Sequence record: NC_061451.1
DNA length: 64,000 nt
Reading direction: 5' to 3' (one strand)
Numbering within the stretch: the stretch's first letter is position 1; each line of letters begins with the position of its first letter. The notes under the pieces were generated by a model, which saw nothing but the letters and a program-made list of their open reading frames with translations, searched no databases and was not told where the DNA came from. The translations under genes were made by a program, and so were the position numbers. Below are positions 2,792 to 57,014 of this stretch, piece by piece.

Positions 2792-3856
2792 GTGACTGAC
2801 ATTAGAAGCAAAACAGCCTACGAATATCTGCACGACACCTATCTTGAAAACAATTTCTTTGTTGGCGTTCCTCGATCTAAACTCACAGCAAAGTTTCAAG
2901 AGTACCTGAAGACAACTAACGGTAGGCTGCATCGTCACGGTCTTCCTCTCGCTGACTTTATGACGTGGGCCAACATGCGCCCTGAGATTAAAAAGGGCGA
3001 ACAGCAATTTGATGCCGTCATGAGACTGCACAAACTTTCTTTTGATGCGGCCGCTGTGTACACACAATTCGTATGGTCGTTTACCAAAGGTGTGTTCAAG
3101 ATCGATCAAGAGATATGGAAACATCTTGCAGAGGGTGAGCCACCCAAGATACTTCCCTCAGATACGCTCAAGCGTTTGCCTAACTGGTCACAGTGGTTAG
3201 ATACGTCATTGAGAATGGTCCGTCACGATAGCGCCAGTGACACGCTGTTTGCTTTGACCACTGAAGGCTTCTGGTCAACGTATTTGTGCTATGATCATCA
3301 AAACAGAACGCACATGTTCCTCGTAGCGCCTACCGTTATGCAGATAGGCAAAGATAGTTTCATCGCAACCACTCTGGTTATGTTTGACATAACAAAAGAC
3401 CATGAGATGGAAGACAACATGGATTGGCAAATCACCGCCACATCAACTGACGGTCAAACTTCCGTACGCTTTACGAAAGAGCATGAAACGTACGGCAAGA
3501 TACTTGACGGTTTGGTTAGTGCTTGGATTGATTCTGCTGTCAATGCGTTGTTGTTCGTCGCTTCATCCGTTGATAACGTTTATAAAGGAGGTGTAAAGGG
3601 AATCGTCCCACGCAAACAAGGTAAGACGTTCAAAGTTCTACCAATACGTGACGTGCGTGTATGGCATGTAGGTTCAGAGTTGCTTAACGAGATACGCCAG
3701 TATGAATCTGATGTAGCCTCAGAGAGTTCTCAGAATCGCCGTGCTCACATTCGTCGTGGTCATTATCATAACTACTGGTATGGCCCGCGTGATGGTGAAC
3801 GTGTTCTAAAAGCCAAATGGCTTCCACCGTGTGTCGTTCGAGGCACCGCAGAGTAA
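2792..3856 (+). CDS. AcrVA2/FinQ-family protein
   Basis: C-terminal RAHIRRGHYHNYWYG...KWLP matches recalled AcrVA2 RPHIRRGHWHGYWQG...RWQP; also W..TKGVFKIDQEI, LKRLPNW, EGFW, VGSELLNEIRQY in the same order. Confidence 0.75.
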   Translation: MTDIRSKTAYEYLHDTYLENNFFVGVPRSKLTAKFQEYLKTTNGRLHRHGLPLADFMTWANMRPEIKKGEQQFDAVMRLHKLSFDAAAVYTQFVWSFTKGVFKIDQEIWKHLAEGEPPKILPSDTLKRLPNWSQWLDTSLRMVRHDSASDTLFALTTEGFWSTYLCYDHQNRTHMFLVAPTVMQIGKDSFIATTLVMFDITKDHEMEDNMDWQITATSTDGQTSVRFTKEHETYGKILDGLVSAWIDSAVNALLFVASSVDNVYKGGVKGIVPRKQGKTFKVLPIRDVRVWHVGSELLNEIRQYESDVASESSQNRRAHIRRGHYHNYWYGPRDGERVLKAKWLPPCVVRGTAE

Positions 3857-42263: not shown

Positions 42264-43853
42264 ATGGCACGTTTCGAAACTAACACTAACCTGGTTGGCA
42301 AAACTATCGTCCTGCTGAACGGCACCAAAGCGAAGATTGAAGACGCTATCGTTTCTGGCTACAAAGTGAAAGGCCAGACCAAGCGCATCGCAACCCGTGA
42401 CGTTATCAAAGAGGGTGCGCACTTTAAAGAAATCGAGCGCACGCCGCTGAGCCAGCTGGAAGATACTGGTGAAGGTTATGTGAAGTTGAAAGAAGCCAAA
42501 GCTGCTTCTAAGAAAGCGCCTGCGAAAGACGCTAAAGCTACTGGCAAAAAAGCTGCGGCAAAAGACAAGCCTGCTAAGACCAGCAAAAAAGCTGCCGCTA
42601 AAGATAAGCCAGCGAAAGAGCAAGAGCCGAAAGTTCGCCGTAAGTCTGCGAAAGAGCAGGGCAACGATTATCAGGAACTCGCGCAGGCTATCATCAAAGG
42701 CGGTCGCCGTGCAGCGCCAGTTGAAATTGACAGCGTAGACGAAGCGCTGACCGATGCAATCGCTAAGCGTCTGACCGCTGTTGTCGAATCGTCTGAGATT
42801 GCGAAACTCGCCGCTGATAACAAAACGCCGATCGCTAACGCACTGACCGTAACTTACGGTGCTGAGTTTGCGACTGATGCAAACGTTGTGCAGATTACGC
42901 TGAACCTGCAATACGCTAAGCCGACTGCTGTTGAGTCTGCCGCTCCTACTCTGGAGAATGCCGAAGCAATCGCAATGCGTGCTGCTAAAATGGCCGCGCC
43001 GAAAGTGAGCGCTAAACTCAAGAAGGCAGTGCGTGAAGCATTCGATATTGAAACAGACCTTGAGCTGGGTACTGTGATTATGTCAGGCGATGATCAATTC
43101 GCTTACTACGGCGAAAGCGCGAAGCACGCTGGCAAAGCGCTGCTGTATGTTGTCGAAACTGACAAGTTCAAATCTGTCTTGGCCTCTACTCTGACCGACT
43201 ACGAACTGCCTGCTGATGAAGAAGCTGAGGCAGAAGAAGAGGAGGAAGAAGAAGAGGAGGAAGAAGAACCCGCTGATGACTTCGACGACGAAGAGGAAGA
43301 AGATGCGGACGATGCAGATGATGCCGACGATGCTGATGGCGACGACGACGAATTCCAGTACGTTGCTGTAGGCGATGAACACTTTGCTCTGGTCAACAAA
43401 AAGATCACAGCCAAGTATCACGATGCACTGGCTGAGCAATTCGGCGTTAGCACCGAAGCGCTGGTCCCAGGCTTAGTGTTGACCAACGGCGAGATCACTT
43501 TCGCTTATCTGGGCAACGATAGCAAAGGCGGCCTGCTCGTTATCGACCTCGACGACGATGCGGACGAAGACGACAACGTTCTGGTCTACCCGAAAGCCGA
43601 CGTTAAATCTCTGACCGACTTCTCTCCTGTGCTGGGTGATGCAGATGAAGAAGACGCAGACGATGCAGAAGAGACCGACGAAGAAGACGAAGATCAGGAC
43701 GACGACTTCGAATTTGACGATGCGCCGACTGCCGACCTCGAAGATCTGTCCGACGATGAGCTGCGTGACCGCGCTGTTGAGATGGGCCTGACCACTGTAC
43801 GCAAAGCTGACAAAATGAACGCCAAGCAACTGCGTGCGCTGCTGTCTGAATAA
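42264..43853 (+). CDS. Multi-domain protein: beta N-domain, Lys/Ala tract, poly-acidic tracts, C-terminal HEH-like module
   Basis: KKAPAKDAK tract; E/D runs; LEDLSDDELRDRAVEMGL...KMNAKQLRALL. Confidence 0.85.
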   Translation: MARFETNTNLVGKTIVLLNGTKAKIEDAIVSGYKVKGQTKRIATRDVIKEGAHFKEIERTPLSQLEDTGEGYVKLKEAKAASKKAPAKDAKATGKKAAAKDKPAKTSKKAAAKDKPAKEQEPKVRRKSAKEQGNDYQELAQAIIKGGRRAAPVEIDSVDEALTDAIAKRLTAVVESSEIAKLAADNKTPIANALTVTYGAEFATDANVVQITLNLQYAKPTAVESAAPTLENAEAIAMRAAKMAAPKVSAKLKKAVREAFDIETDLELGTVIMSGDDQFAYYGESAKHAGKALLYVVETDKFKSVLASTLTDYELPADEEAEAEEEEEEEEEEEEPADDFDDEEEEDADDADDADDADGDDDEFQYVAVGDEHFALVNKKITAKYHDALAEQFGVSTEALVPGLVLTNGEITFAYLGNDSKGGLLVIDLDDDADEDDNVLVYPKADVKSLTDFSPVLGDADEEDADDAEETDEEDEDQDDDFEFDDAPTADLEDLSDDELRDRAVEMGLTTVRKADKMNAKQLRALLSE

Positions 43854-47356: not shown

Positions 47357-50300
47357 ATGTCCGAGAACAATCAAAGCGGAGCTACTCGCTTCGGCACAGA
47401 AGTGCAGGCCGGCATCGCAGAAGCGCAACGCCGTGCTAACTCTGCTGAGAGTGGCAAGCTGAACAAATGCACGATCATCGTGCTGACTTCGATTGACGCC
47501 AACCAGCGTTACTCTTATCTGTCCGCAGACGAACAACTGCGCGAAGAACTGGTGCGTGGTAAAGTAATCAATCGTCTGCCTGATCTGTTAGAGCGTGCTG
47601 GTGGTAATACCGCTGCTGACAATAACAGCGCGTTCCACATCCTGCATCCAAACAACGGTGTGCCTACCTCGATCGATGCTCGCATCAAAGTGGGCGAAGG
47701 CAATGCGGTCATTCTGTCATATACTGTAAACAAAGCAGTGACAGAGATGCACGGTAGCTTATCGCTTGCTCTGTTTGCATCTGGCGCCGAAGACTTAAAT
47801 GATCTGGCCGCTGATTTCGGTATTCACGCAATTGCGATTGTTGAAGAATCGAAAGCCGCTGAGTTCATCAAAGGACTTGAAGCTCAGGTGGAAGCGTTGA
47901 ATATTGTAAATCTCACTAGCATTGATGATTCTAACGATTCGTTAGACCTGCCAGTGATTGACTTCGCTGCATTAGCGGGCAATCCTACAACAGTGCTTAC
48001 GGGCGCTGTGCGTACCTTCATCATGCAATCAATCAGCGGCGAAGTCTTCGCTGCAATCCCTAATAACGGAGAACTGAACGTGAAAAACGATAACGTGGCT
48101 CAGCCTGCTGACCTGGAAGAAGACTTCGACAACAATGATGAGATTGTTGATCAGAACGGCGGCGAAGGCGAAGTTACTGGCGAAGAGCTGCTGGGCTACA
48201 AAGCAGAAAATCTTTCGCTTGACCAAATGCGTAGTGCGCTTGAAGCGATCAACTACGACCTGTCTGAAATGACGGAAGAAGCAATCCGTGAAGCGTTCGA
48301 AACTGAACAGAACCTTTACCTGGGTGGCGGCGATGATGAATCTTCCGAAGAAGAGGAAGATGAAGACGCCACTGATGTTGACAGCGACGAAGAAGAAGAG
48401 GAAGAAGACGAGGAGTTCGATGCTCCTGCGTATCTGGCTCAAGCGCTCGCTGCTGAAAACTTTAGCCGTAGCGATCTGAAACTGCTGGTCAAGTCGCAAG
48501 ACCTGAAAGTGATGAAGAACGACACTCCTGAAACTCTGGTGCAGAAGCTGCTGGACCTGGTGCAGGACGCATCGTCTGATGAAGTGTTCGAACTGATCAC
48601 TGTGTTCGTTGAACTGCTGGACGAGCACGGCGTTGAGTGTGACGCGCTGCGTGCTACCATCGCTGAGGATGAAAGCGATGAAGACGAAGAAGAGGACGGC
48701 GAAGACGAAGACGCCGATGAAGATGGCGACGACGAAGAAGAGGAAGATGAAGAGGAGTCTGATGAAGACGAATCTGAAACCGAATCTGACGACGAACCTG
48801 CAACGCTGTTTTCTGCCTCTGACGTTACTGATCCTCTCGACTACTTCCAGTTCGAAGGTGGTGACCTGACTCACGAACAACGCGCCGCTGCCGTACAGGC
48901 GATGGGTTCAAGCACTGTTGGTCTGAACATCGTTCAGGTCATGAAAGCGTTCAATCAAATCCGTTCACAGTCTAACGCGATTGACATTGCCGCTGATGAA
49001 GCCGACTCTGCGCTGTACGACATGCTGACTGCGCTGCCGTATGCAACGCTGCTGAGCTTCGCTCAAGAGATTGAGCTGGACGTTGACGGCGAAGAGTCTG
49101 CCGAAGATCTCGTCACTTTGCTGATGGACGAATCTACTGCCGACAGCGATACGCTGAAAGCGCTGGCGTATGTGTTTGAAACCTACGGCGGCCTGGGTGT
49201 TGAAGCAGATGATATCCTGCTGATGGACTGGCATGAAGCGCTGGCGCTGGTTATTCCTGTGTATGCATCGTCAGACGAAGTTGAGTCCGATGCAGAAGAA
49301 GACGAAGACGAAGACGTTATCGCTGATGAAGATTCGTCTAACGCTAACCTGAAGTTCCTGAAATCTGTTGACGTCAACAACCCTGTCGGCCCGATGCTCG
49401 AAGTTGATATGGACCGCACTCTGGTTATCAACTACACCTTCACTGACGGTAACACTTACCGCGATGTGCAAGATGAGCTGGCTGATATCGGTGGCGTTAA
49501 CTACCGCTTCCCGTTCAATCTGGGCAAAGCTGGTAAAGCAAACAAGAGCAGCGCGCCTGGTAGCCTGATTGCTCCTGCTGAACATCTGATCGCAATGTTA
49601 GACCGCGCTGGTACTACTCGCTTCTTAGCTGACCCGAACACCTTCGATGTTGGTGTGTGGGCAGAATCTCTGGAGCGTATGCTGAACGCAGAAATCGCTA
49701 ACAATCTGTATGCTGGTCGCATTGAAGACGGCGCTGACCCGCAGCAAGCTGGCATCGTAGTCGGTGACTTCATCGATGAAGACGAGCAAGCAGAAGTTGC
49801 TGACCTCGGCCTGCTGGATGAAGATGAGCTGGAAGCGTACACTGGTGATCATCTGCCGATTGCAAGCCTGTACAATGCGCAAGCCCGCGTACGTCCAGTC
49901 AACGTCGATAGCTCTTACGTTGCACTGAGCACCGTAGTGCTGAACGTTGCAGTCCCTGGCTTCTGGTGTGACTCTGATGTTGGCCGTCTGGTGCAAGCGT
50001 GTGTTAATCGCGTAATCAGCCTGGCAGAAAGCGTTGAAGGCATCAAAGTGTACGCAGGCTTCACTCTGGAATCTGCTGCGCTGCTGAACAACGGTCGCCT
50101 GTACGAAGTTGTTGGTGCGCTGCGTGAGATGGACGGTGTGCAGTCTTACTCCGCCGCAGACGCTGCTAACTTCTCAGAAGCGGAAGACATTATCGAAGTA
50201 GCGTCTTCTATCGATGATCGTGACCTGCCGTTCACTGTACTGGCAAGCGGCCTGTCTGGCGCAACGTTTGAAAACGGCGGTGACCTGACCGTGCTGGTTC

Positions 50301-50368
50301 CGTGCTCTGTCTTCGACGAAGAAGAAGATGAGTCCGAAGAGGACGAGTCAGAAGAAGACGAAGAGTAA
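47357..50368 (+). CDS. 1003-aa highly acidic protein with three HEH-like modules
   Basis: Long D/E tracts; AENLSLDQMRSAL, AENFSRSDLKLLV...PETLVQKLL, LPYATLLSFAQEIEL...AEDLVTLL; GAGGAG RBS. Confidence 0.85.
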   Translation: MSENNQSGATRFGTEVQAGIAEAQRRANSAESGKLNKCTIIVLTSIDANQRYSYLSADEQLREELVRGKVINRLPDLLERAGGNTAADNNSAFHILHPNNGVPTSIDARIKVGEGNAVILSYTVNKAVTEMHGSLSLALFASGAEDLNDLAADFGIHAIAIVEESKAAEFIKGLEAQVEALNIVNLTSIDDSNDSLDLPVIDFAALAGNPTTVLTGAVRTFIMQSISGEVFAAIPNNGELNVKNDNVAQPADLEEDFDNNDEIVDQNGGEGEVTGEELLGYKAENLSLDQMRSALEAINYDLSEMTEEAIREAFETEQNLYLGGGDDESSEEEEDEDATDVDSDEEEEEEDEEFDAPAYLAQALAAENFSRSDLKLLVKSQDLKVMKNDTPETLVQKLLDLVQDASSDEVFELITVFVELLDEHGVECDALRATIAEDESDEDEEEDGEDEDADEDGDDEEEEDEEESDEDESETESDDEPATLFSASDVTDPLDYFQFEGGDLTHEQRAAAVQAMGSSTVGLNIVQVMKAFNQIRSQSNAIDIAADEADSALYDMLTALPYATLLSFAQEIELDVDGEESAEDLVTLLMDESTADSDTLKALAYVFETYGGLGVEADDILLMDWHEALALVIPVYASSDEVESDAEEDEDEDVIADEDSSNANLKFLKSVDVNNPVGPMLEVDMDRTLVINYTFTDGNTYRDVQDELADIGGVNYRFPFNLGKAGKANKSSAPGSLIAPAEHLIAMLDRAGTTRFLADPNTFDVGVWAESLERMLNAEIANNLYAGRIEDGADPQQAGIVVGDFIDEDEQAEVADLGLLDEDELEAYTGDHLPIASLYNAQARVRPVNVDSSYVALSTVVLNVAVPGFWCDSDVGRLVQACVNRVISLAESVEGIKVYAGFTLESAALLNNGRLYEVVGALREMDGVQSYSAADAANFSEAEDIIEVASSIDDRDLPFTVLASGLSGATFENGGDLTVLVPCSVFDEEEDESEEDESEEDEE

Positions 50369-50393: not shown

Positions 50394-50419
50394 AATCTTT
50401 CTCAACAGGAACTGTCTAA

Positions 50420-51241
50420 ATGTCAGAACAAGTTGACCACGCAACTAACATCATTAAGATGGTTAGTGACCGTGATGCTAAGATTAGCGAGCTGTCTGTT
50501 ACGGCAAACGAGCTGCAAGGTCAGGTGAATGACTATGCTGCCGAACTCGCCGCATCTGCTGTGCGTGAAACTGCATTGCGTTTGAAGCTACGTTCTCAAG
50601 AGCGCCAGACGAATACCGATTTAGTTCGTCTGGAAACTCGCACGAAAGAGCTGGTGGATATTTCAAACACTCAGATGGCCGAAAGTAACGAGCTTAAAGC
50701 ACGCGTTGAAGAAATGAACGCTAAGCTGGCGCAAGTTGACCCGATGCCGTTCGTGCTGCATCTGGTTGCTGTGCAAGCCGCATCTGTGTTCTCGTACATG
50801 GTGCAGTCGTTTGCTCATGCTCATGTTAACCAGCGCACCAACGATACCACACGCACACTCAGTGCTCTGATGGTAGGCGAAACAGCGCGGCGTTATCAGT
50901 CTTTCGAAAAGACCATCGCTCGTTACTGCAACTCGATTGGCGCTGAACGTCCGAAAGCAAATGATGTGCGTAACGCTTTCCCTGACTTCATGCGTAATGA
51001 AGCTGATTTATTCTGTAAAGACCCGAAGTACAGTCACGATTGCATGGCGTTAGCTGCTATGCTTAATCTGCCTCGTACATCGTGGATGTATCGAAAGTCT
51101 CTGGACGCCGTAAACCACTTCGCGTGGATTGCAGCTTTCGAAGGCAGTCCTCAAGAGTTTGAGTCAGATTCAGATTACAACGAATTATACGTTAACTCGC
51201 TTATCGATATTGCAAGCGCGTTAATCGGGCAAAACTTTTAA
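50420..51241 (+). CDS. Protein with N-terminal coiled coil
   Basis: Heptad-rich first ~105 aa. Confidence 0.75.
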   Translation: MSEQVDHATNIIKMVSDRDAKISELSVTANELQGQVNDYAAELAASAVRETALRLKLRSQERQTNTDLVRLETRTKELVDISNTQMAESNELKARVEEMNAKLAQVDPMPFVLHLVAVQAASVFSYMVQSFAHAHVNQRTNDTTRTLSALMVGETARRYQSFEKTIARYCNSIGAERPKANDVRNAFPDFMRNEADLFCKDPKYSHDCMALAAMLNLPRTSWMYRKSLDAVNHFAWIAAFEGSPQEFESDSDYNELYVNSLIDIASALIGQNF

Positions 51242-51286
51242 TCTGTAAAACTTCCCTGTGATTTATTCTGTAAACACTAATTGAAG
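51242..51286 (+). promoter_or_regulatory. Paired TCTGTAAA boxes upstream of 51337 gene
   Basis: AATCTGTAAAACT...TCTGTAAACACTAATTGAAG; repeated at 51922-52000. Confidence 0.55.
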
Positions 51287-51336
51287 TTCGCAACGGGCAA
51301 AAGCCCAAATCGAAAAATTAACGGAGTTCCACTACA

Positions 51337-51906
51337 ATGGCAAAAGCTACTAAGTCAACTAACCTGGTTCCTACCCTGGTTTCTCGCATCGCTAAAAAGT
51401 CTGGCTCTATCGGTACTTCGAAAGCAAAAGCAACTGACCTGCCGCATGACATTCTGATCGAATCTCAGCACGTTGTCGAAATCATCGGTTATATCACTGA
51501 CCGTTCTGCGAACCACGTTACTCTGCGTCACAAAAAAGGCCACGGTTCTTCTTCTCAGATCGTTTCAACCTTCGGCCCGGGTCAACTGCTGACCGTTCTG
51601 GGTGAAGCTGGTTCACACGGTTCTGTGCGTGCGCTGATTACTGCTCCGGTCTGCGAACTGAAAGGCTTCACCATTAAGTATGACGGCGATACCATCATCG
51701 CTACTTCTATCGAAACTGGCGAAGTGATTCACGTTAACACCCAGCTGGCCGGTCACACCGTTCGCGCTACTGTGAACGAAACTGCCGCCGCTAAGAAATA
51801 CGGCACGCCTGCTCCAGGCAAAGGCAAGAAAGATGCTAAGCCTGCTAAAGCAGACAAAGCAGCGAAAGGCGGTAAGAAAAAGAAAGGTAGCGACGAAGAC
51901 TTTTAA
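51337..51906 (+). CDS. Basic protein with Lys/Ala tail ending SDEDF
   Basis: Host-optimal codons; KADKAAKGGKKKKGSDEDF C-terminus. Confidence 0.85.
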   Translation: MAKATKSTNLVPTLVSRIAKKSGSIGTSKAKATDLPHDILIESQHVVEIIGYITDRSANHVTLRHKKGHGSSSQIVSTFGPGQLLTVLGEAGSHGSVRALITAPVCELKGFTIKYDGDTIIATSIETGEVIHVNTQLAGHTVRATVNETAAAKKYGTPAPGKGKKDAKPAKADKAAKGGKKKKGSDEDF

Positions 51907-51921
51907 TCGCTGATCTGAAAA

Positions 51922-52000
51922 TCTGTAAAAACTGATTATGCAGAGCAACAAAAAATAAAGTTGCTCTGCCGTTAAACGAATCTGTAAACATTAATTGAAG
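51922..52000 (+). promoter_or_regulatory. Paired TCTGTAAA boxes flanking a perfect hairpin
   Basis: TCTGTAAAAACT, GCAGAGCAAC/GTTGCTCTGC stem, TCTGTAAACATTAATTGAAG. Confidence 0.55.
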
Positions 52001-52036
52001 CAAGTCGCTTCTCATCCCATACAGGAAATAAAAACC

Positions 52037-52789
52037 ATGGCTAAATCTGCTAAAGTAACCGTAACCGTCGCACAGAAAGTTCTGGCTCAGATGCTGGGTG
52101 TTGTTGTAGCGAACGCAAGCGAGAAAGAACTCGTTGCGATTCTGTCTGACCTGGGCCTGACTGTTGCTGCGAAAGGTAAAGGTGCTAAAGCTGAGAAAGC
52201 TGCGAAAGGCGGCAAGAAAGCTAAAGCCGCTACCGTTGCTCAGATCGTTAAGGCCGTTGAAGAAGAGGAAGCTATCTCCCTCGACGGCGTGAGTGAAGAT
52301 GACCTGCGTGCTGCGGTCGTCAAAGCTAAGCTGGCTAAGGCCAACAAAGCTAAAGCGCTGGACGAAGAGGAGTTGACTGAACTCCTGACCGACGCAATGG
52401 GTGCCGAGTCTGATGAAGACGAGGAAGAGGACGAAGAAGAAGAGGACGAAGACGAGGACGAAGACGACTCGGACGACGAAGACGAAGATGAAGACGACGA
52501 GGACTCAGATGATGAAGATGAGGAGGAGGAAGACGAAGACGAGGATGAAGATGAGGACGAAGATGAAGATCTCGACCTCGACGGCCTCGACGAAGACGAA
52601 CTCCGCGCCCTCGTGATCGACAACAAGCTGGCCACTAAGGCCAAAGCTAAAAAGATGGACGAAGACGAACTTCGTGAACTGTGTGAATCCCACTTCGGCG
52701 GCGACGATGAAGACGAAGACGAAGATGAGGACGAAGACGATGAAGACTTCGACGACGAAGACGAAGACGAAGACGAAGACGACGAATAA
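52037..52789 (+). CDS. Charge-blocked protein: basic tract, two HEH-like modules, long poly-D/E tracts
   Basis: LDGVSEDDLRAAVV...LDEEELTELL and LDGLDEDELRALVI...MDEDELRELC; ATG 52037. Confidence 0.85.
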   Translation: MAKSAKVTVTVAQKVLAQMLGVVVANASEKELVAILSDLGLTVAAKGKGAKAEKAAKGGKKAKAATVAQIVKAVEEEEAISLDGVSEDDLRAAVVKAKLAKANKAKALDEEELTELLTDAMGAESDEDEEEDEEEEDEDEDEDDSDDEDEDEDDEDSDDEDEEEEDEDEDEDEDEDEDLDLDGLDEDELRALVIDNKLATKAKAKKMDEDELRELCESHFGGDDEDEDEDEDEDDEDFDDEDEDEDEDDE

Positions 52790-53002
52790 GTCCTGATCTG
52801 CCGCTGCCCTGCAAGACTAATGAGTGTCTGCGCAGGGCAAGAAATATTCGAAAAATAGTTCGAATTATTTCGCAAAAAGTTTGAAAAATTCCTGTCGTTG
52901 TTTATTGCACATAGTAATATTCGACTACAGGAATTAAACCTGAAAAATTTTACTTTTATCCAACGCGACGAGTCGCACACAATAAATTCACGGAGTATTA
53001 CG

Positions 53003-53515
53003 ATGACTAAGAAAATCATTTCTGGCCTGAACAAAAACCTGAAAGCTATCGCTAAATCAGAAGCTGCCCTGGCCAAAACTGTTGTTGCTACCAACAAAGA
53101 GATCGAAAACCTGGGTTCACAGCGTGCTGGTATCGAAGCGCAGATCGCTGAACTGTCTGGCGTTGCTGCTCCTGCCAAAGCTGATAAAAAAGCTAAAGGC
53201 GCGAAAGCAGAAAAAGCGGCCAAGCCTGCTAAAGCTGAAAAAGCAGCTAAAGCCGGTAAGAAAGAAAAAGCTGCTAAAGCTGAAAAGCCTGCCAAAGCTG
53301 ATAAAAAAGCTAAAGGCGCGAAAGCGGATAAAGCTGCTAAGCCTGCCAAAGCTGAAAAAGCTGGCAAGAAAGAAAAAGCTGCTACCAAGCCTGCTAAAGC
53401 TGATAAAAAAGCTAAAGGCGCCAAGGCCGACAAAGCTGCTAAAGGCGGTAAAGCTGACAAAGCCGGTAAGAAAAAGAAAGCGCAGTCTGATGACTTCGAA
53501 TTCGAAATGGAATAA
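53003..53515 (+). CDS. Histone H1/AlgP-like Lys-Ala-Pro protein with N-terminal coiled coil
   Basis: PAKADKKAKGAKA repeats; ends DDFEFEME; ATG 53003 after GGAG. Confidence 0.8.
   Translation: MTKKIISGLNKNLKAIAKSEAALAKTVVATNKEIENLGSQRAGIEAQIAELSGVAAPAKADKKAKGAKAEKAAKPAKAEKAAKAGKKEKAAKAEKPAKADKKAKGAKADKAAKPAKAEKAGKKEKAATKPAKADKKAKGAKADKAAKGGKADKAGKKKKAQSDDFEFEME
53171..53430 (+). repeat. Coding tandem repeat (3 units of ~102-117 bp)
   Basis: CCTGC(C/T)AAAGCTGATAAAAAAGCTAAAGGCGC at 53171, 53288, 53390. Confidence 0.85.
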
Positions 53516-53612
53516 GCAAGCGGTCGCATAGCGCGATAACTTGATCGAGAGGGCAGCGCTGACGGGCGTTTGCCCTCTTGTCGTATCTATCTCATTTTCG
53601 AGGCTCTTTAAA

Positions 53613-54098
53613 ATGTCCAAACAAGAAGTATTCAACAGGCTTGATGATCTTCACTCCAAAGAACGTGAGCGTATCAAACAAGCCAAGCAAGGCCCCTCCT
53701 ATTTCGAACTGACGAACCTGCGTATTGAAGCAGCCGCTCGTCTAGCTCGTGCTCTCCAAACTCTCAAAGCCGCAAACGTTGTTGGTAACGTTGAAGGTGT
53801 CTCTCTGCAGGAAGATGCGCTTGAAGTCGCTCAAGCCTACTGGACTGCTATCTTAGATGGCTTAACCCCTGTAGTAGTTGATGACTCGCCTATGCGCAAG
53901 CTGCTTGCTGGTATGCCTGCATGTATCGAAGCCTTCCGTGTTGTCGTAATGGAAAGCGCTATGCGTGAACATCTGGTCGTTCAATGCAATGCGATTGCAG
54001 ATGACATTAAGGGCTTCCCGCAACTGACTGGGCATGTTCTGCCTACTATTCAACACACCTGCGAAGAGGGGTGCAACTGTGGCTCAATCACTGAGTGA
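53613..54098 (+). CDS. Hypothetical protein
   Basis: ATG 53613 after GAGG. Confidence 0.7.
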   Translation: MSKQEVFNRLDDLHSKERERIKQAKQGPSYFELTNLRIEAAARLARALQTLKAANVVGNVEGVSLQEDALEVAQAYWTAILDGLTPVVVDDSPMRKLLAGMPACIEAFRVVVMESAMREHLVVQCNAIADDIKGFPQLTGHVLPTIQHTCEEGCNCGSITE

Positions 54099-54849
54099 GA
54101 AGATTAACCGTTACTTCAATCTGATGGAGGACATCCGTGCTGAGATGTTCCGTGTGATTGATGTATCTGACCGTTACTTCGGTATCGTTAGTTTCAACAC
54201 TAACATGCAGGCACTGCAAACCACACTGGTGAGCAAGTCCACCCTGATGGAAGTTAAGCTGCTTGAGGGTATCACTGGTGCGGAGCTGATTGCGTTTGGC
54301 AATATGGTTCACACTGTAGAGCAATGGGTTGCTGGTGGCATGAAGGGTGCTTTCCCTATCGAGCAGACCAAAGACGTGTATGCCAAATATCGCGCTGCTA
54401 CCTCAGATGAACCACAGGCACAAAGTGAACCTGAGCCTGCTAATACCCCGCAGCCTGATGCTGATGAGTTAGACAGCCAGGAACTGGACAATATCAAAGT
54501 TCAACTTCTGTCCTTCGATGACTCTGAACTGATCGACCATGCCGCTCAGTTTAAACTTGGGACGCGTACACGCCTGAGAAGAATGAGCCGAGACGATCTG
54601 CTGGACATGCTGTTTGACCATCACGGTATCTATGCAGAAAACGACCAGCGCCGTAATGAAAGTGTTGCAGACTGGTTAGAACGTATACCTCTTGATGATG
54701 CGCTCCGTGAAGTCGACCGCATAGATGATAGCAGTGTACTTGATCACGTTGCGGACGCTATGAGCGTTATGACGGGTGTCAATGACGCTGTGACGCGAGC
54801 GCGTATTAAGCAGGCTCTGAAAGAGCTACACACTAAGCCCGCGCAGTAA
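54079..54849 (+). CDS. Protein with HEH-like module
   Basis: LLSFDDSELIDHAAQFKLGTRTRLRRMSRDDLLDML; likely GTG start 54079. Confidence 0.75.
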   Translation: MAQSLSEKINRYFNLMEDIRAEMFRVIDVSDRYFGIVSFNTNMQALQTTLVSKSTLMEVKLLEGITGAELIAFGNMVHTVEQWVAGGMKGAFPIEQTKDVYAKYRAATSDEPQAQSEPEPANTPQPDADELDSQELDNIKVQLLSFDDSELIDHAAQFKLGTRTRLRRMSRDDLLDMLFDHHGIYAENDQRRNESVADWLERIPLDDALREVDRIDDSSVLDHVADAMSVMTGVNDAVTRARIKQALKELHTKPAQ

Positions 54850-54865
54850 GTCAAATTTGTCTCTA

Positions 54866-54918
54866 CACTAAGCTGGACAGATCGTGGGTAGCGTCTGACG
54901 CTCTGCCTATGTTATAAT
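54866..54918 (+). promoter_or_regulatory. Bipartite phage promoter copy 12 (upstream of topoisomerase)
   Basis: CACTAAGCTGGACAGATC; TGtTATAAT, -10 at 54913; 33-nt spacing. Confidence 0.75.
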
Positions 54919-54989
54919 ACATATAGGACAAGTAGTGTCTGAATATGCTAATATCGAGTGGTCAACGCTACTCATTAGGAGAAACGAAA

Positions 54990-57014
54990 ATGGCGAAAAC
55001 GCCTAAAGCCGCAAAAGTCAAAAAGGGTGACGGCTCCCAAGATGGCTTCACTATCGCAGAAGGCCTCGACGGTATAAGATTGAATCCCGGCATGTACATG
55101 GGTCAACAGGGCGCGGACATGGCGTATCGCGCTGTGAAAGAACCTGTGGACAATGACTACGATGAATACATCGCAGGTCGTAACAAGTTGATCGAAGTGG
55201 TCATTGATTACGATAGCGACCTGAACATCGTAGCTGACCAAGCAGGCGGCATTCCTACCGACTTCAAGAAACTGAAAGACGGTACGAAAGAAACGATCAT
55301 GACCGCAGCGTTTAGCCGTGTTCATGCGGGTGGTAAATTCAACGATCAGGCATATAAGACCTCTGCTGGTACACACGGTGTAGGTGTAGCTGCACTGAAC
55401 GCAATCTCCAGTCAGTTGCGTGTGTGGTCAATGTACAAAGGCAGTTGCGCTTATCAGATGTGGCAATGCGGCGAAGTCAAGTCTGGCAAAGACCCTAAGA
55501 AAGTCAAGACCATCGACAAAGACGTTATGAGCCTGTTGCGCGATAAGAAGCACAGCAAGTACGGTACTGTGGTAGCGTGGACGCTTGACCAGACCGTTGT
55601 GTCTGCTGATGCACAGCGTGGTAAGAAGCTGCCTAAGAACTACCGTCACGCTGCTCCTAATCCAGCTCAGCTTGGCGAGTGGCTGCGTAACATGTCAATG
55701 CTCAACCCAGGCCTTGAGATTCGCCTGACGTTGATCAAGAAGGGCAAGCGCAAAGAGTTCACGTTCATCAACAAGAAAGACCTGAACTATGTTGTGAAGA
55801 CTATGTGTGAAGAACGCGAGCTGGGTACTGTCGGCAAGCCGTTCATCTTCAAGTCTGACAATATCACGGCTGCGCTCGTCTGGACAGATCATGCAGACAC
55901 CGACAACTTCCTCAGTTTCGTTAACACCAGCCCAACAGTTGACGGCGGGTGGCATGTAGTAGGTTTCCGTGATGCTCTGTTTGATGCAATCAAGCCGTTC
56001 ATGAAAGAACCGAAAGGTAAGGGCAAGAAAAAGCAGGGCTTCAAACAAGAAGACTTGTTGATTGGCCTGACCGGTATGTTCGACTGGCGTATGCACGGTG
56101 CTCAATACACCTCGCAGGTAAAAGACAAGCTGGCCAGCCGCGTCGAGAAAGACGTGTACGAAATGCTGAAAGATGCTTTCGTGAAATACTTCAAGGACAA
56201 TAAGAAGGTCGCTACGACAATCATCAAACGTGCCGAAGCGATGAACAAGGGACGTGAAGAACTCAGCGCTGTCGTTAAGTCTATGGCTGACACGAAGAAG
56301 AAGCTGAAAGGTAACGCACTGCCTGCCGACCTCGTTGTCGCAAACAAGTGTAAGCCGCATGAGCGCGAGCTTGTCGTGGTGGAAGGGGATTCTGCTGGTG
56401 GTACTGCGAAAGATGCGCGTAACCCTGACTATCAGGAAGTTATGAAAGCTGGTGGTAAGCCGCTGAACGGTCTGAAAGCAAGTCTGGCTGACGTGCTCAA
56501 GCACAAAGAAGTGCAGGGTATGCTGGTGAGTATCGGTGCTGACCTGAAATCACTTGACCCGAAAGCAGAAGCGCCAAAGTTGAGCACGAAGAATCTGCGT
56601 ATCGGCAACATCCTGTTCCTTGCTGATGCTGACCCCGATGGCTTCCACATCAACGTGCTGTTCCTCGGCGTTATCTATCGCTTGCTGCCTGACTTGATGA
56701 AAGAAGGCCGTGTGTGGATTGTTGATGCACCGCTGTACAACGTTATTCATCAAGGCAAACACTACGGTGGTATGACGTTTGAAGAATGCCGTGCTAAAGC
56801 GCCGTCTGCTGTAAAAGACAAAGACATTGTACGCGCCAAAGGTTGGGGTGAAGTTGAACCTGACGTGCTTGAAGCAATCGCGTTCAATCCGAAAACTCGT
56901 CGTCTCATTCGTGTTAACCCGTTTGAGAACGTCGAGCAGGAACGTTTCTTTAGAGGTGTAGTTGCAGAAGATGCAGTTCACCGTCGTCGCTTGCTCGGTC
57001 TGGAGGCAGCATGA
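54990..57014 (+). CDS. gyrB: Type IIA DNA topoisomerase B subunit (GyrB/ParE-like: GHKL ATPase plus TOPRIM)
   Basis: IRLNPGMY, EPVDN..DE, HAGGKF, GTHGVGV, VEGDSA, DADPDG.HI, KGWGE; ATG 54990 after AGGAG. Confidence 0.92.
   Translation: MAKTPKAAKVKKGDGSQDGFTIAEGLDGIRLNPGMYMGQQGADMAYRAVKEPVDNDYDEYIAGRNKLIEVVIDYDSDLNIVADQAGGIPTDFKKLKDGTKETIMTAAFSRVHAGGKFNDQAYKTSAGTHGVGVAALNAISSQLRVWSMYKGSCAYQMWQCGEVKSGKDPKKVKTIDKDVMSLLRDKKHSKYGTVVAWTLDQTVVSADAQRGKKLPKNYRHAAPNPAQLGEWLRNMSMLNPGLEIRLTLIKKGKRKEFTFINKKDLNYVVKTMCEERELGTVGKPFIFKSDNITAALVWTDHADTDNFLSFVNTSPTVDGGWHVVGFRDALFDAIKPFMKEPKGKGKKKQGFKQEDLLIGLTGMFDWRMHGAQYTSQVKDKLASRVEKDVYEMLKDAFVKYFKDNKKVATTIIKRAEAMNKGREELSAVVKSMADTKKKLKGNALPADLVVANKCKPHERELVVVEGDSAGGTAKDARNPDYQEVMKAGGKPLNGLKASLADVLKHKEVQGMLVSIGADLKSLDPKAEAPKLSTKNLRIGNILFLADADPDGFHINVLFLGVIYRLLPDLMKEGRVWIVDAPLYNVIHQGKHYGGMTFEECRAKAPSAVKDKDIVRAKGWGEVEPDVLEAIAFNPKTRRLIRVNPFENVEQERFFRGVVAEDAVHRRRLLGLEAA

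Follow-up and report, generated by a model that had tools for sequence, protein, structure and literature searches.

Pairs of polycationic and polyanionic proteins are well known from chromatin, where they include linker histone H1 and prothymosin-alpha, basic nuclear proteins and nucleoplasmin, and the acidic tail of HMGB1. The single-stranded DNA-binding proteins (SSBs) of bacteria and phages consist of a folded DNA-binding core and a disordered linker that leads to an acidic tip whose last residue is aromatic, and the heads of T4-type phages contain basic internal proteins alongside acidic core proteins. Lys-rich H1-like proteins are known from a few bacteria, examples being chlamydial Hc1 and Pseudomonas AlgP. 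The annotation of Hc1-type “H1-like” genes in “moraphages”, which are large aquatic phages (PMC12619734), provides a precedent for Lys-rich histone-like genes in big phages.

Here, we analyzed three consecutive genes, gp332, gp333, and gp334 (hereafter gpA, gpB, and gpC), from the last 64 kb of the genome of Erwinia jumbo phage pEa_SNUABM_7 (NC_061451.1, 265,635 bp, genus Snuvirus), a 64,000-nucleotide stretch referred to below as the window. By megablast, positions 50400–57014 are 100% identical to this record. These genes encode a small beta-domain protein with basic extensions (gpA), a polyacid (gpB), and a Lys-rich protein with a coiled-coil-like N-terminus (gpC), and together form a cassette that is real, deeply conserved, and uncharacterized. 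The cassette is best regarded as a variant of the Lys-rich nucleoid-protein theme, within which its dedicated polyanion partner is unprecedented, and our literature search returned nothing on the cassette, the gpA family, or the paired polyacid.

Codon bias of the cassette and its conservation across jumbo phages

An original prediction, made from the DNA letters alone, had proposed the three open reading frames (ORFs) as strongly codon-optimized genes. Both parts of this proposal were confirmed. The ORFs correspond to annotated genes, each labeled “hypothetical protein” in NC_061451.1, all on the plus strand: gpA at 51337..51906 (189 residues, phrog_22271), gpB at 52037..52789 (250 residues), and gpC at 53003..53515 (170 residues, phrog_38087). 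Among window genes of at least 80 codons, for which the median effective codon number (Nc) is 50.8, gpC has the lowest value (26.3), gpA the second lowest (36.0), and gpB the sixth (39.1), compared to 35.6 for the major head gene. When the 88 window genes were instead scored for how closely their codon usage follows that of the phage’s own major head, sheath, and tube genes, ranks 1 and 2 went to gpC and gpA, and rank 6 to gpB. By these measures, the codon bias of gpA and gpC is as strong as that of the major capsid gene, which suggests that both proteins are made in stoichiometric rather than catalytic amounts. Function calls from Pfam, NCBIfam, and PHROGs for the trio and its neighbors were rejected, as the matches were either to PHROGs of unknown function or at chance level, and matches obtained when the gpA, gpB, gpC, and module alignments were used as profiles against PDB sequences were likewise set aside as compositional or due to chance.

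The order of the three genes (gpA, polyacid, coiled-coil/Lys-rich protein) is kept in phages Y3 and Yoloswag, Dickeya phage JA11, and Yersinia phage fHe-Yen9-02, as well as in two Pseudomonas phages, Lu11 and PaBG, that are very distant (gpA identity of only 27–34%). The cassette or a variant of it was also found on six metagenomic contigs: L009 and L018 carry all three genes, L016 carries gpA and the polyacid, and L012 carries gpA and gpC only. L011 has a gpA–polyacid fusion whose tip resembles that of Erwinia gpB, followed by a gpC-type gene, while L017 encodes a hybrid gpB/gpC-like protein in which a coiled coil is joined to acidic-aromatic runs and a Lys-rich end. Given this conservation of gene order across very distant phages, together with the fusion and hybrid variants, we consider the three genes to be tied to each other, and the variants suggest that this coupling is functional.

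The original prediction had also drawn attention to a neighboring topoisomerase gene. In pEa_SNUABM_7, the gene for the GyrB-like large subunit of a topoisomerase II (54990..57014, plus strand) starts 1.5 kb downstream of the trio, and a GyrB-like gene is found 1–4 kb downstream of the cassette in the enterobacterial phages and on contigs L009, L011, L012, and L017. Apart from the two Pseudomonas phages, these are all the relatives with enough flanking sequence. In PaBG, the cassette is located ~4 kb upstream of genes for a phage sigma factor and an SSB. BLASTP searches with the flanking genes gp329–331 and gp335–336 yielded no homologs at the distant loci.

Protein architecture compared to known families

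The most H1-like of the three proteins is gpC, which starts with a helical, coiled-coil-type N-terminus of 55 residues followed by ~100 residues of K/A-rich repeats and an acidic tip, DDFEFEME. Lysine and arginine account for 49 of its 170 residues and alanine for another 48, with a net charge of +27. As predicted from the letters, PAKADKKAKGAKA repeats follow the coiled coil: three copies are present, although the coiled-coil-type matches of the N-terminus are weak. At the DNA level, the repeat region has a 102-nucleotide period, with ~2.5 copies and 9-nucleotide sub-periods inside. The acidic-aromatic tails described in the original prediction (SDEDF in gpA, DDFEFEME in gpC) are both present. 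Of the tips of the three proteins, those of gpC and gpB are conserved: five enterobacterial phages all retain F165 and F167 in the gpC tip and F238 inside the acidic run at the gpB tip. A gpC-type tip with Phe was identified in 9 of the 10 lineages with a readable C-terminus, and tips like those of gpB and gpC also occur in Lu11, PaBG, and metagenomic relatives.

The likeness of these proteins to H1, Hc1, AlgP, and SSB, which was part of the same prediction, extends to composition but not to family membership. A Pfam search with gpC at E ≤ 10 returned no family, including the linker-histone domain, and neither gpC nor its Lu11 and PaBG counterparts matched the Hc1 profile PF07432 at the same threshold. 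The 56-residue N-terminus of gpC gave no match in a word-index search at the size of the database used. With no trio member belonging to the H1, Hc1, SSB, or nucleoplasmin families, the likeness is compositional, and gpC fits the AlgP/H1-tail class, i.e., tandem short K/A/P repeats in a basic disordered region, which is a compositional class rather than a homology family. With H1, Hc1, and AlgP tails, gpC shares a long low-complexity region of Lys/Ala (plus Pro/Glu/Asp) repeats and a codon bias that implies abundance. Unlike these proteins, however, gpC starts with a coiled coil and ends in a conserved acidic Phe-x-Phe tip, and is always accompanied by gpA and usually by the polyacid. The winged helix of linker histones H1/H5 is also absent, the helical coiled-coil-like N-terminus being the only ordered part of gpC.

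The second protein, gpB, had been singled out for its very long D/E runs, and indeed 110 of its 250 residues are D or E, for a net charge of −84. A small helical N-domain is followed by a Lys-rich linker, in which the decapeptide discussed below is located, two helical modules, three poly-D/E runs, and a Phe tip. The modules are two copies of a 43-residue unit (residues ~79–122 and ~177–222; internal duplication z = 14), with poly-D/E runs between and after them. AlphaFold2 modeled both with a pLDDT (predicted local distance difference test) of 80–87 and the remainder of the protein with low confidence, and a Foldseek search with this model returned no fold match. Comparison to nucleoplasmin- and prothymosin-alpha-type proteins yielded only compositional matches to unrelated acidic proteins. 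The parallel with chromatin chaperone pairs is one of arrangement: next to the gene for a strongly basic, disordered protein lies one whose product has D/E runs of tens of residues, and aromatic residues inside the acidic tracts of the phage proteins are reminiscent of histone-chaperone anchor motifs. Unlike the chromatin pairs, with which it has no sequence or fold kinship, gpB contains folded helical modules and a basic linker.

The third protein, gpA, combines a basic N-terminal arm (residues 1–34), an all-beta core (residues ~35–150) predicted with confidence (AlphaFold2 pLDDT ~90), and a disordered Lys-rich tail ending in SDEDF. The phrog_22271 profile covers residues 1–183 (E = 9.8e-79), a full-length family match, and a profile search against 1.84 billion representatives delineated a family of 71 clusters at 50% identity, nearly all of 150–230 residues. 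We consider this to be a new beta-domain family. The gpA model had no match in the PDB at E ≤ 0.001 (Foldseek), and its matches in a viral structure library were exclusively to uncharacterized proteins, including ones from phages Alexandra and PaBG and Achromobacter phage Motura. Recurrent weak Foldseek matches to ribosomal uL6, tandem Agenet, and SH3-like folds were rejected on account of their TM-scores of ~0.15.

Across the 71 family representatives, the basic arm is the most persistent extension (64 representatives), while 40 have a basic tail. An acidic tip with a hydrophobic last residue is found in 34, this residue being aromatic in 23, and in 10 others a long poly-D/E tail takes the place of the tip. 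The “SSB-like” label initially given to the gpA tail is therefore only partly justified: SDEDF is present, but an acidic tip is not a fixed feature, being found in only 11 of 29 close homologs. Like SSBs, gpA has a folded core and a disordered linker, with an acidic aromatic- or hydrophobic-ended tip in about half of the representatives. Unlike SSBs, the gpA core has no recognizable OB fold and the linker is strongly basic, and neither the family profile nor its members matched any SSB or OB family. The phage also encodes a separate SSB (phrog_15004).

All three proteins contain, once each, the basic decapeptide noted in the original prediction, which starts at nucleotides 51847 (gpA), 52187 (gpB), and 53423 (gpC). 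When D and E are treated as equivalent, the longest string common to the three Lys-rich segments is 11 residues, compared to a maximum of 8 in 20,000 composition-preserving shuffles, and the DNA of the gpA tail (51820–51886) is 81% identical over 67 nucleotides to a gpC repeat segment. The presence of the decapeptide in all three proteins thus held, but its interpretation as a conserved functional motif was rejected, as the exact sequence is lineage-specific and not kept in orthologs. The string shared between gpA tail and gpC repeats, 11 residues here, reaches 18 identical residues in PaBG (locus L008, 7001–7585 and 8330–8938; gp126 and gp124) and only 2–7 residues in the other eight genomes or contigs compared. 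Since the PaBG string differs from the Erwinia one, occasional exchange between low-complexity tails within a genome is suggested. With the exact decapeptide lost in orthologs and long sharing seen only in some genomes, the shared string most probably reflects such tail exchange, or a common repeat unit, rather than a conserved motif.

Expression signals and other charged proteins

The spacers upstream of the three genes are unusually long (95, 130, and 213 nucleotides for gpA, gpB, and gpC, respectively). Upstream of gpA, the plus-strand interval 51242..51286 includes two copies of TCTGTAAA, at 51242 and 51267, i.e., 94 and 69 nucleotides before the gene, which resemble promoters of a phage-specific class. 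Two further copies precede gpB, at 51922 and 51981 (51922..52000, plus strand), and a 20-mer around the gpB-proximal copy matches one found before gpA and nowhere else in the window. Overall, TCTGTAAA occurs 10 times in the window where 2.4 occurrences would be expected (~fourfold enrichment), always on the coding strand; besides the four copies above, plus-strand sites include 1904, 12520, 23908, 28110, and 59414. Another 14 sites were found within positions 1–150000 of NC_061451.1, all co-oriented with the local genes. Most copies are located in spacers or gene ends, 40–95 nucleotides before a start codon and often ahead of codon-biased genes, and the major head, sheath, and tube genes have none upstream. 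The 7-mer core CTGTAAA falls within elements that carry the annotation “putative middle/late promoter” in Lu11, where the polyacid gene is preceded by two of them. This core is also found at about −52 to −75 and −94 to −135 before gpA and/or gpB homologs in most relatives, namely Y3, Yoloswag, JA11, fHe-Yen9-02, Lu11, L009, and L018.

For gpC, the upstream region includes no TCTGTAAA, and the 7-mer core is missing before this gene in every phage with a separate gpB. It harbors instead a different element (52889..52933, plus strand), in which 7-nucleotide inverted arms, TTCCTGT and ACAGGAA, surround a −10-like TAATAT, and into which most invariant columns of a five-phage alignment fall. A simple sigma-70 scan missed this element. 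The presence of a distinct conserved element suggests that gpC is regulated separately from gpA and gpB. On the 3′ side, gpA is followed by a hairpin with a perfect 10-bp stem (51940..51969, plus strand; −16.9 kcal/mol, z = −6.2), gpB by one whose arm sequences vary among relatives while the pairing is kept (52805..52839, plus strand; −21.6 kcal/mol), and gpC by a strong hairpin and then a T-rich stretch (53542..53583, plus strand; −28.8 kcal/mol, z = −4.7). With an upstream element and a 3′ hairpin of its own, each gene of the trio may be expressed independently. Further downstream, an extended −10-like TGTTATAAT is located at 54910–54918, ~70 nucleotides before the annotated GyrB-like start, a position which hints at host-type promoter recognition of the topoisomerase gene.

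Alternating charge blocks are not restricted to the cassette. The annotated SSB of this phage (gp245, phrog_15004), encoded just outside the window (NC_061451.1 199300–200556), carries a ~150-residue tail of alternating poly-D/E and poly-Lys, and the PaBG SSB (L021:48–1259, minus strand) has the same type of charge-block tail, with a Trp-containing acidic tip. A bona fide DNA-binding protein of this group thus uses the same style. Within the window, gp325 (529 residues, 42264..43853, plus strand; Nc 38.7, phrog_33433) is a fourth protein of this kind: besides a stretch rich in K, A, and P, it has acidic runs that include the strings DDFDD and DDDFEFDD, and a gpB-type helical module is present at its C-terminus. 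The two gpB modules align with this C-terminus at E-values of 1e-6 and 2e-4, and gpB residues 79–119 match the gp325 PHROG. A comparison of the gp325 module to the SAP domain (PF02037) gave 18.6 bits, below the 23.9 cut-off (E = 0.0014), and a weaker LEM match; given this sub-threshold score, the SAP-like reading is only a lead, and the gpB modules alone did not match SAP/HeH (PF02037). A single module resembling the gpB one (z = 6.2) was also detected in gp336 (256 residues, 54079..54849, plus strand).

Strongly acidic tracts are found in gp325 as well as in gp330 and several other proteins, including gp149. The gp330 gene (1003 residues, 47357..50368, plus strand), two genes upstream of gpA, encodes several poly-D/E runs, and its position is occupied by an acidic protein on L009 (3347–4837), L012 (34–1269), and L018 (2001–3209), with no homology detectable by BLASTP. 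Annotated as an “ATPase”, gp149 (NC_061451.1 108885–110957) is the most acidic protein of the head cluster, with 175 D/E residues and 89 windows in which at least 9 of 12 residues are D/E, adjoins the major head gene, and may represent a scaffold-type protein. Taken together, these sequences make charge-block disorder a conserved trait of this phage group.

Acidic-aromatic C-termini are rarer. Among 1504 stop-to-stop ORFs from the whole genome, they were restricted to gpA, gpB, gpC, gp008 (NC_061451.1 7831–8217), which adjoins the portal gene, gp061 (NC_061451.1 37050–37157), and gp233 (NC_061451.1 193137–193601), which also includes Lys-rich and acidic blocks; the scan returned four additional ORFs that do not resemble true tips. 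None of these C-termini belongs to a polymerase or helicase gene, and the possibility that the tips serve as a docking motif common to replisome proteins received no support. Beyond pEa_SNUABM_7, inteins split the GyrB-like genes of both L011 (6691–9741) and L012 (4398–6845), as shown by Intein_splicing matches, to which L011 adds a weak HNH match, and the 142-kb contig L011 carries a PC4-family (PF02229) gene, similar to single-stranded DNA-binding proteins and coactivators, at 3439–3714, two genes upstream of the gpA homolog.

Candidate roles of the cassette

We reasoned from composition and genomic context that the trio may form an abundant, DNA-associated polycation/polyanion system of mostly disordered, charge-segregated proteins acting during intracellular phage development, a reading to which we assign a probability of about 40%. 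The “chromatin kit” of the original prediction is plausible, but that the proteins bind and condense DNA and that gpB acts as a chaperone is inferred from the features described above, as are the interaction of gpB with gpC and gpA and the timing. Under this model, gpC would di- or oligomerize via its N-terminal coiled coil, while its Lys/Ala-rich tail would bind DNA non-specifically, as H1-, Hc1-, and AlgP-type tails do, leading to bridging or compaction. To this, gpA would contribute its beta core, which is folded, has a conserved basic loop, and lies between the basic N-terminal arm and the equally basic tail. The gpB polyanion and the Phe-ended acidic tips would compete with DNA for these basic segments, and this competition would maintain the solubility of the polycations, set the time of their binding or undo it, and bring them to a common docking partner. 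The trio, the charge-block tail of the SSB, and the neighboring acidic proteins would then together organize replicating phage DNA beside topoisomerase II.

Several lines of evidence point to DNA rather than to the particle as the site of action. The gene neighborhood includes topoisomerase II in this phage and a sigma factor and SSB in PaBG, the charge-block style is held in common with the SSB, and gp325 provides a weak SAP-like signal. In addition, none of the PaBG homologs gp124–126 is among the 14 abundant bands identified in virions of that phage (PMC7412058). The same observations reduce the appeal of a packaged or prohead role, in which gpA and gpC would be basic internal proteins entering the head with or before the DNA, and gpB an acidic counter-ion or scaffold displaced as DNA enters. 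Such a role would be in line with the capsid-like codon bias, with the “middle/late” annotation of this class of upstream element in Lu11, and with the location of gp008, whose tip is also acidic-aromatic, beside the portal gene. It would also recall the pairing of basic internal and acidic core proteins in T4-type heads: like these internal proteins and phi29 p6, gpA and gpC are small phage-encoded proteins, inferred to be very abundant and with a charge-based relation to DNA. However, PHROGs reveals no homology to either system, and the PaBG proteome, the only one available for the group, does not support presence in the virion. Moreover, the cassette lies in a replication/recombination neighborhood 145 kb from the head module, which has an acidic protein of its own in gp149, and the major head, sheath, and tube genes lack TCTGTAAA upstream. 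We regard a packaged role as unlikely.

Another possibility is that the cassette is directed at the host. Expressed possibly from a different and earlier promoter, gpC could coat the host nucleoid and silence it, or protect phage DNA as it enters the cell, with gpB acting as a DNA-mimicking polyanion that soaks up DNA-binding defense proteins of the host or later neutralizes gpC. The conserved upstream element of gpC, with its −10-like hexamer and its difference from those of gpA and gpB, would fit this scenario, as would the resemblance of the gpB charge to that of DNA mimics. In work cited in PMC12619734, as described there, Hc1-type proteins expressed in E. coli shut down transcription. The tight pairing of polycation and polyanion and the fusion variants are, however, better explained by mutual interaction, the simple sigma-70 scan missed the gpC element, and no similarity to known anti-defense proteins was found in Pfam or PHROGs. 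A host-directed or anti-defense function appears improbable.

A bolder extension of the DNA-associated model is that gpC and gpA, the polyanions gpB, gp330, and gp325, and the SSB co-condense with phage DNA by electrostatic phase separation, forming a membraneless replication compartment that concentrates topoisomerase II and the replisome, with the acidic Phe tips as a common docking signal. We know of no phage-nucleus shell described for jumbo phages of this group, and consider this compartment to be a long shot. Least probable is an RNA- or ribosome-directed role, in which the Lys-rich tails and small beta core would bind rRNA or mRNA like the basic extensions of ribosomal proteins and favor phage translation: the high abundance would suit a ribosome-stoichiometric factor and the weak compositional matches are to ribosomal proteins, but these matches are at chance level and the conserved neighbors are topoisomerase rather than translation genes.

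Our preferred reading, a DNA-associated polycation/polyanion system, must itself be weighed against several observations. No recognized DNA-binding domain scored above any threshold in the trio, the gpA fold matches no solved structure, and disordered Lys-rich tails bind any polyanion, including RNA and ribosomes. As poly-D/E tracts are common in the proteome, up to and including the head-module protein gp149, gpB need not be a dedicated partner, and some lineages do without gpB as a separate gene. The topoisomerase neighborhood, which held for the enterobacterial phages and four of the contigs, does not extend to the fetched flank of the Pseudomonas phages: in neither Lu11 nor PaBG do the 7 kb that follow the trio contain a GyrB-like gene. 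Assignment of the upstream elements to a temporal class is putative, and the gpC element differs from those of gpA and gpB. Finally, the PaBG virion proteome (PMC7412058) covers Coomassie-visible bands only, and Lys-rich or acidic proteins are difficult to identify by tryptic mapping.

Overall, this analysis proposes a testable role for at least five “hypothetical” genes, which belong to the core gene set of an entire family of jumbo phages. If the proteins do organize DNA, they would represent a phage counterpart of the eukaryotic arrangement of histones and acidic chaperones, and would offer a tractable model of polycation–polyanion regulation.

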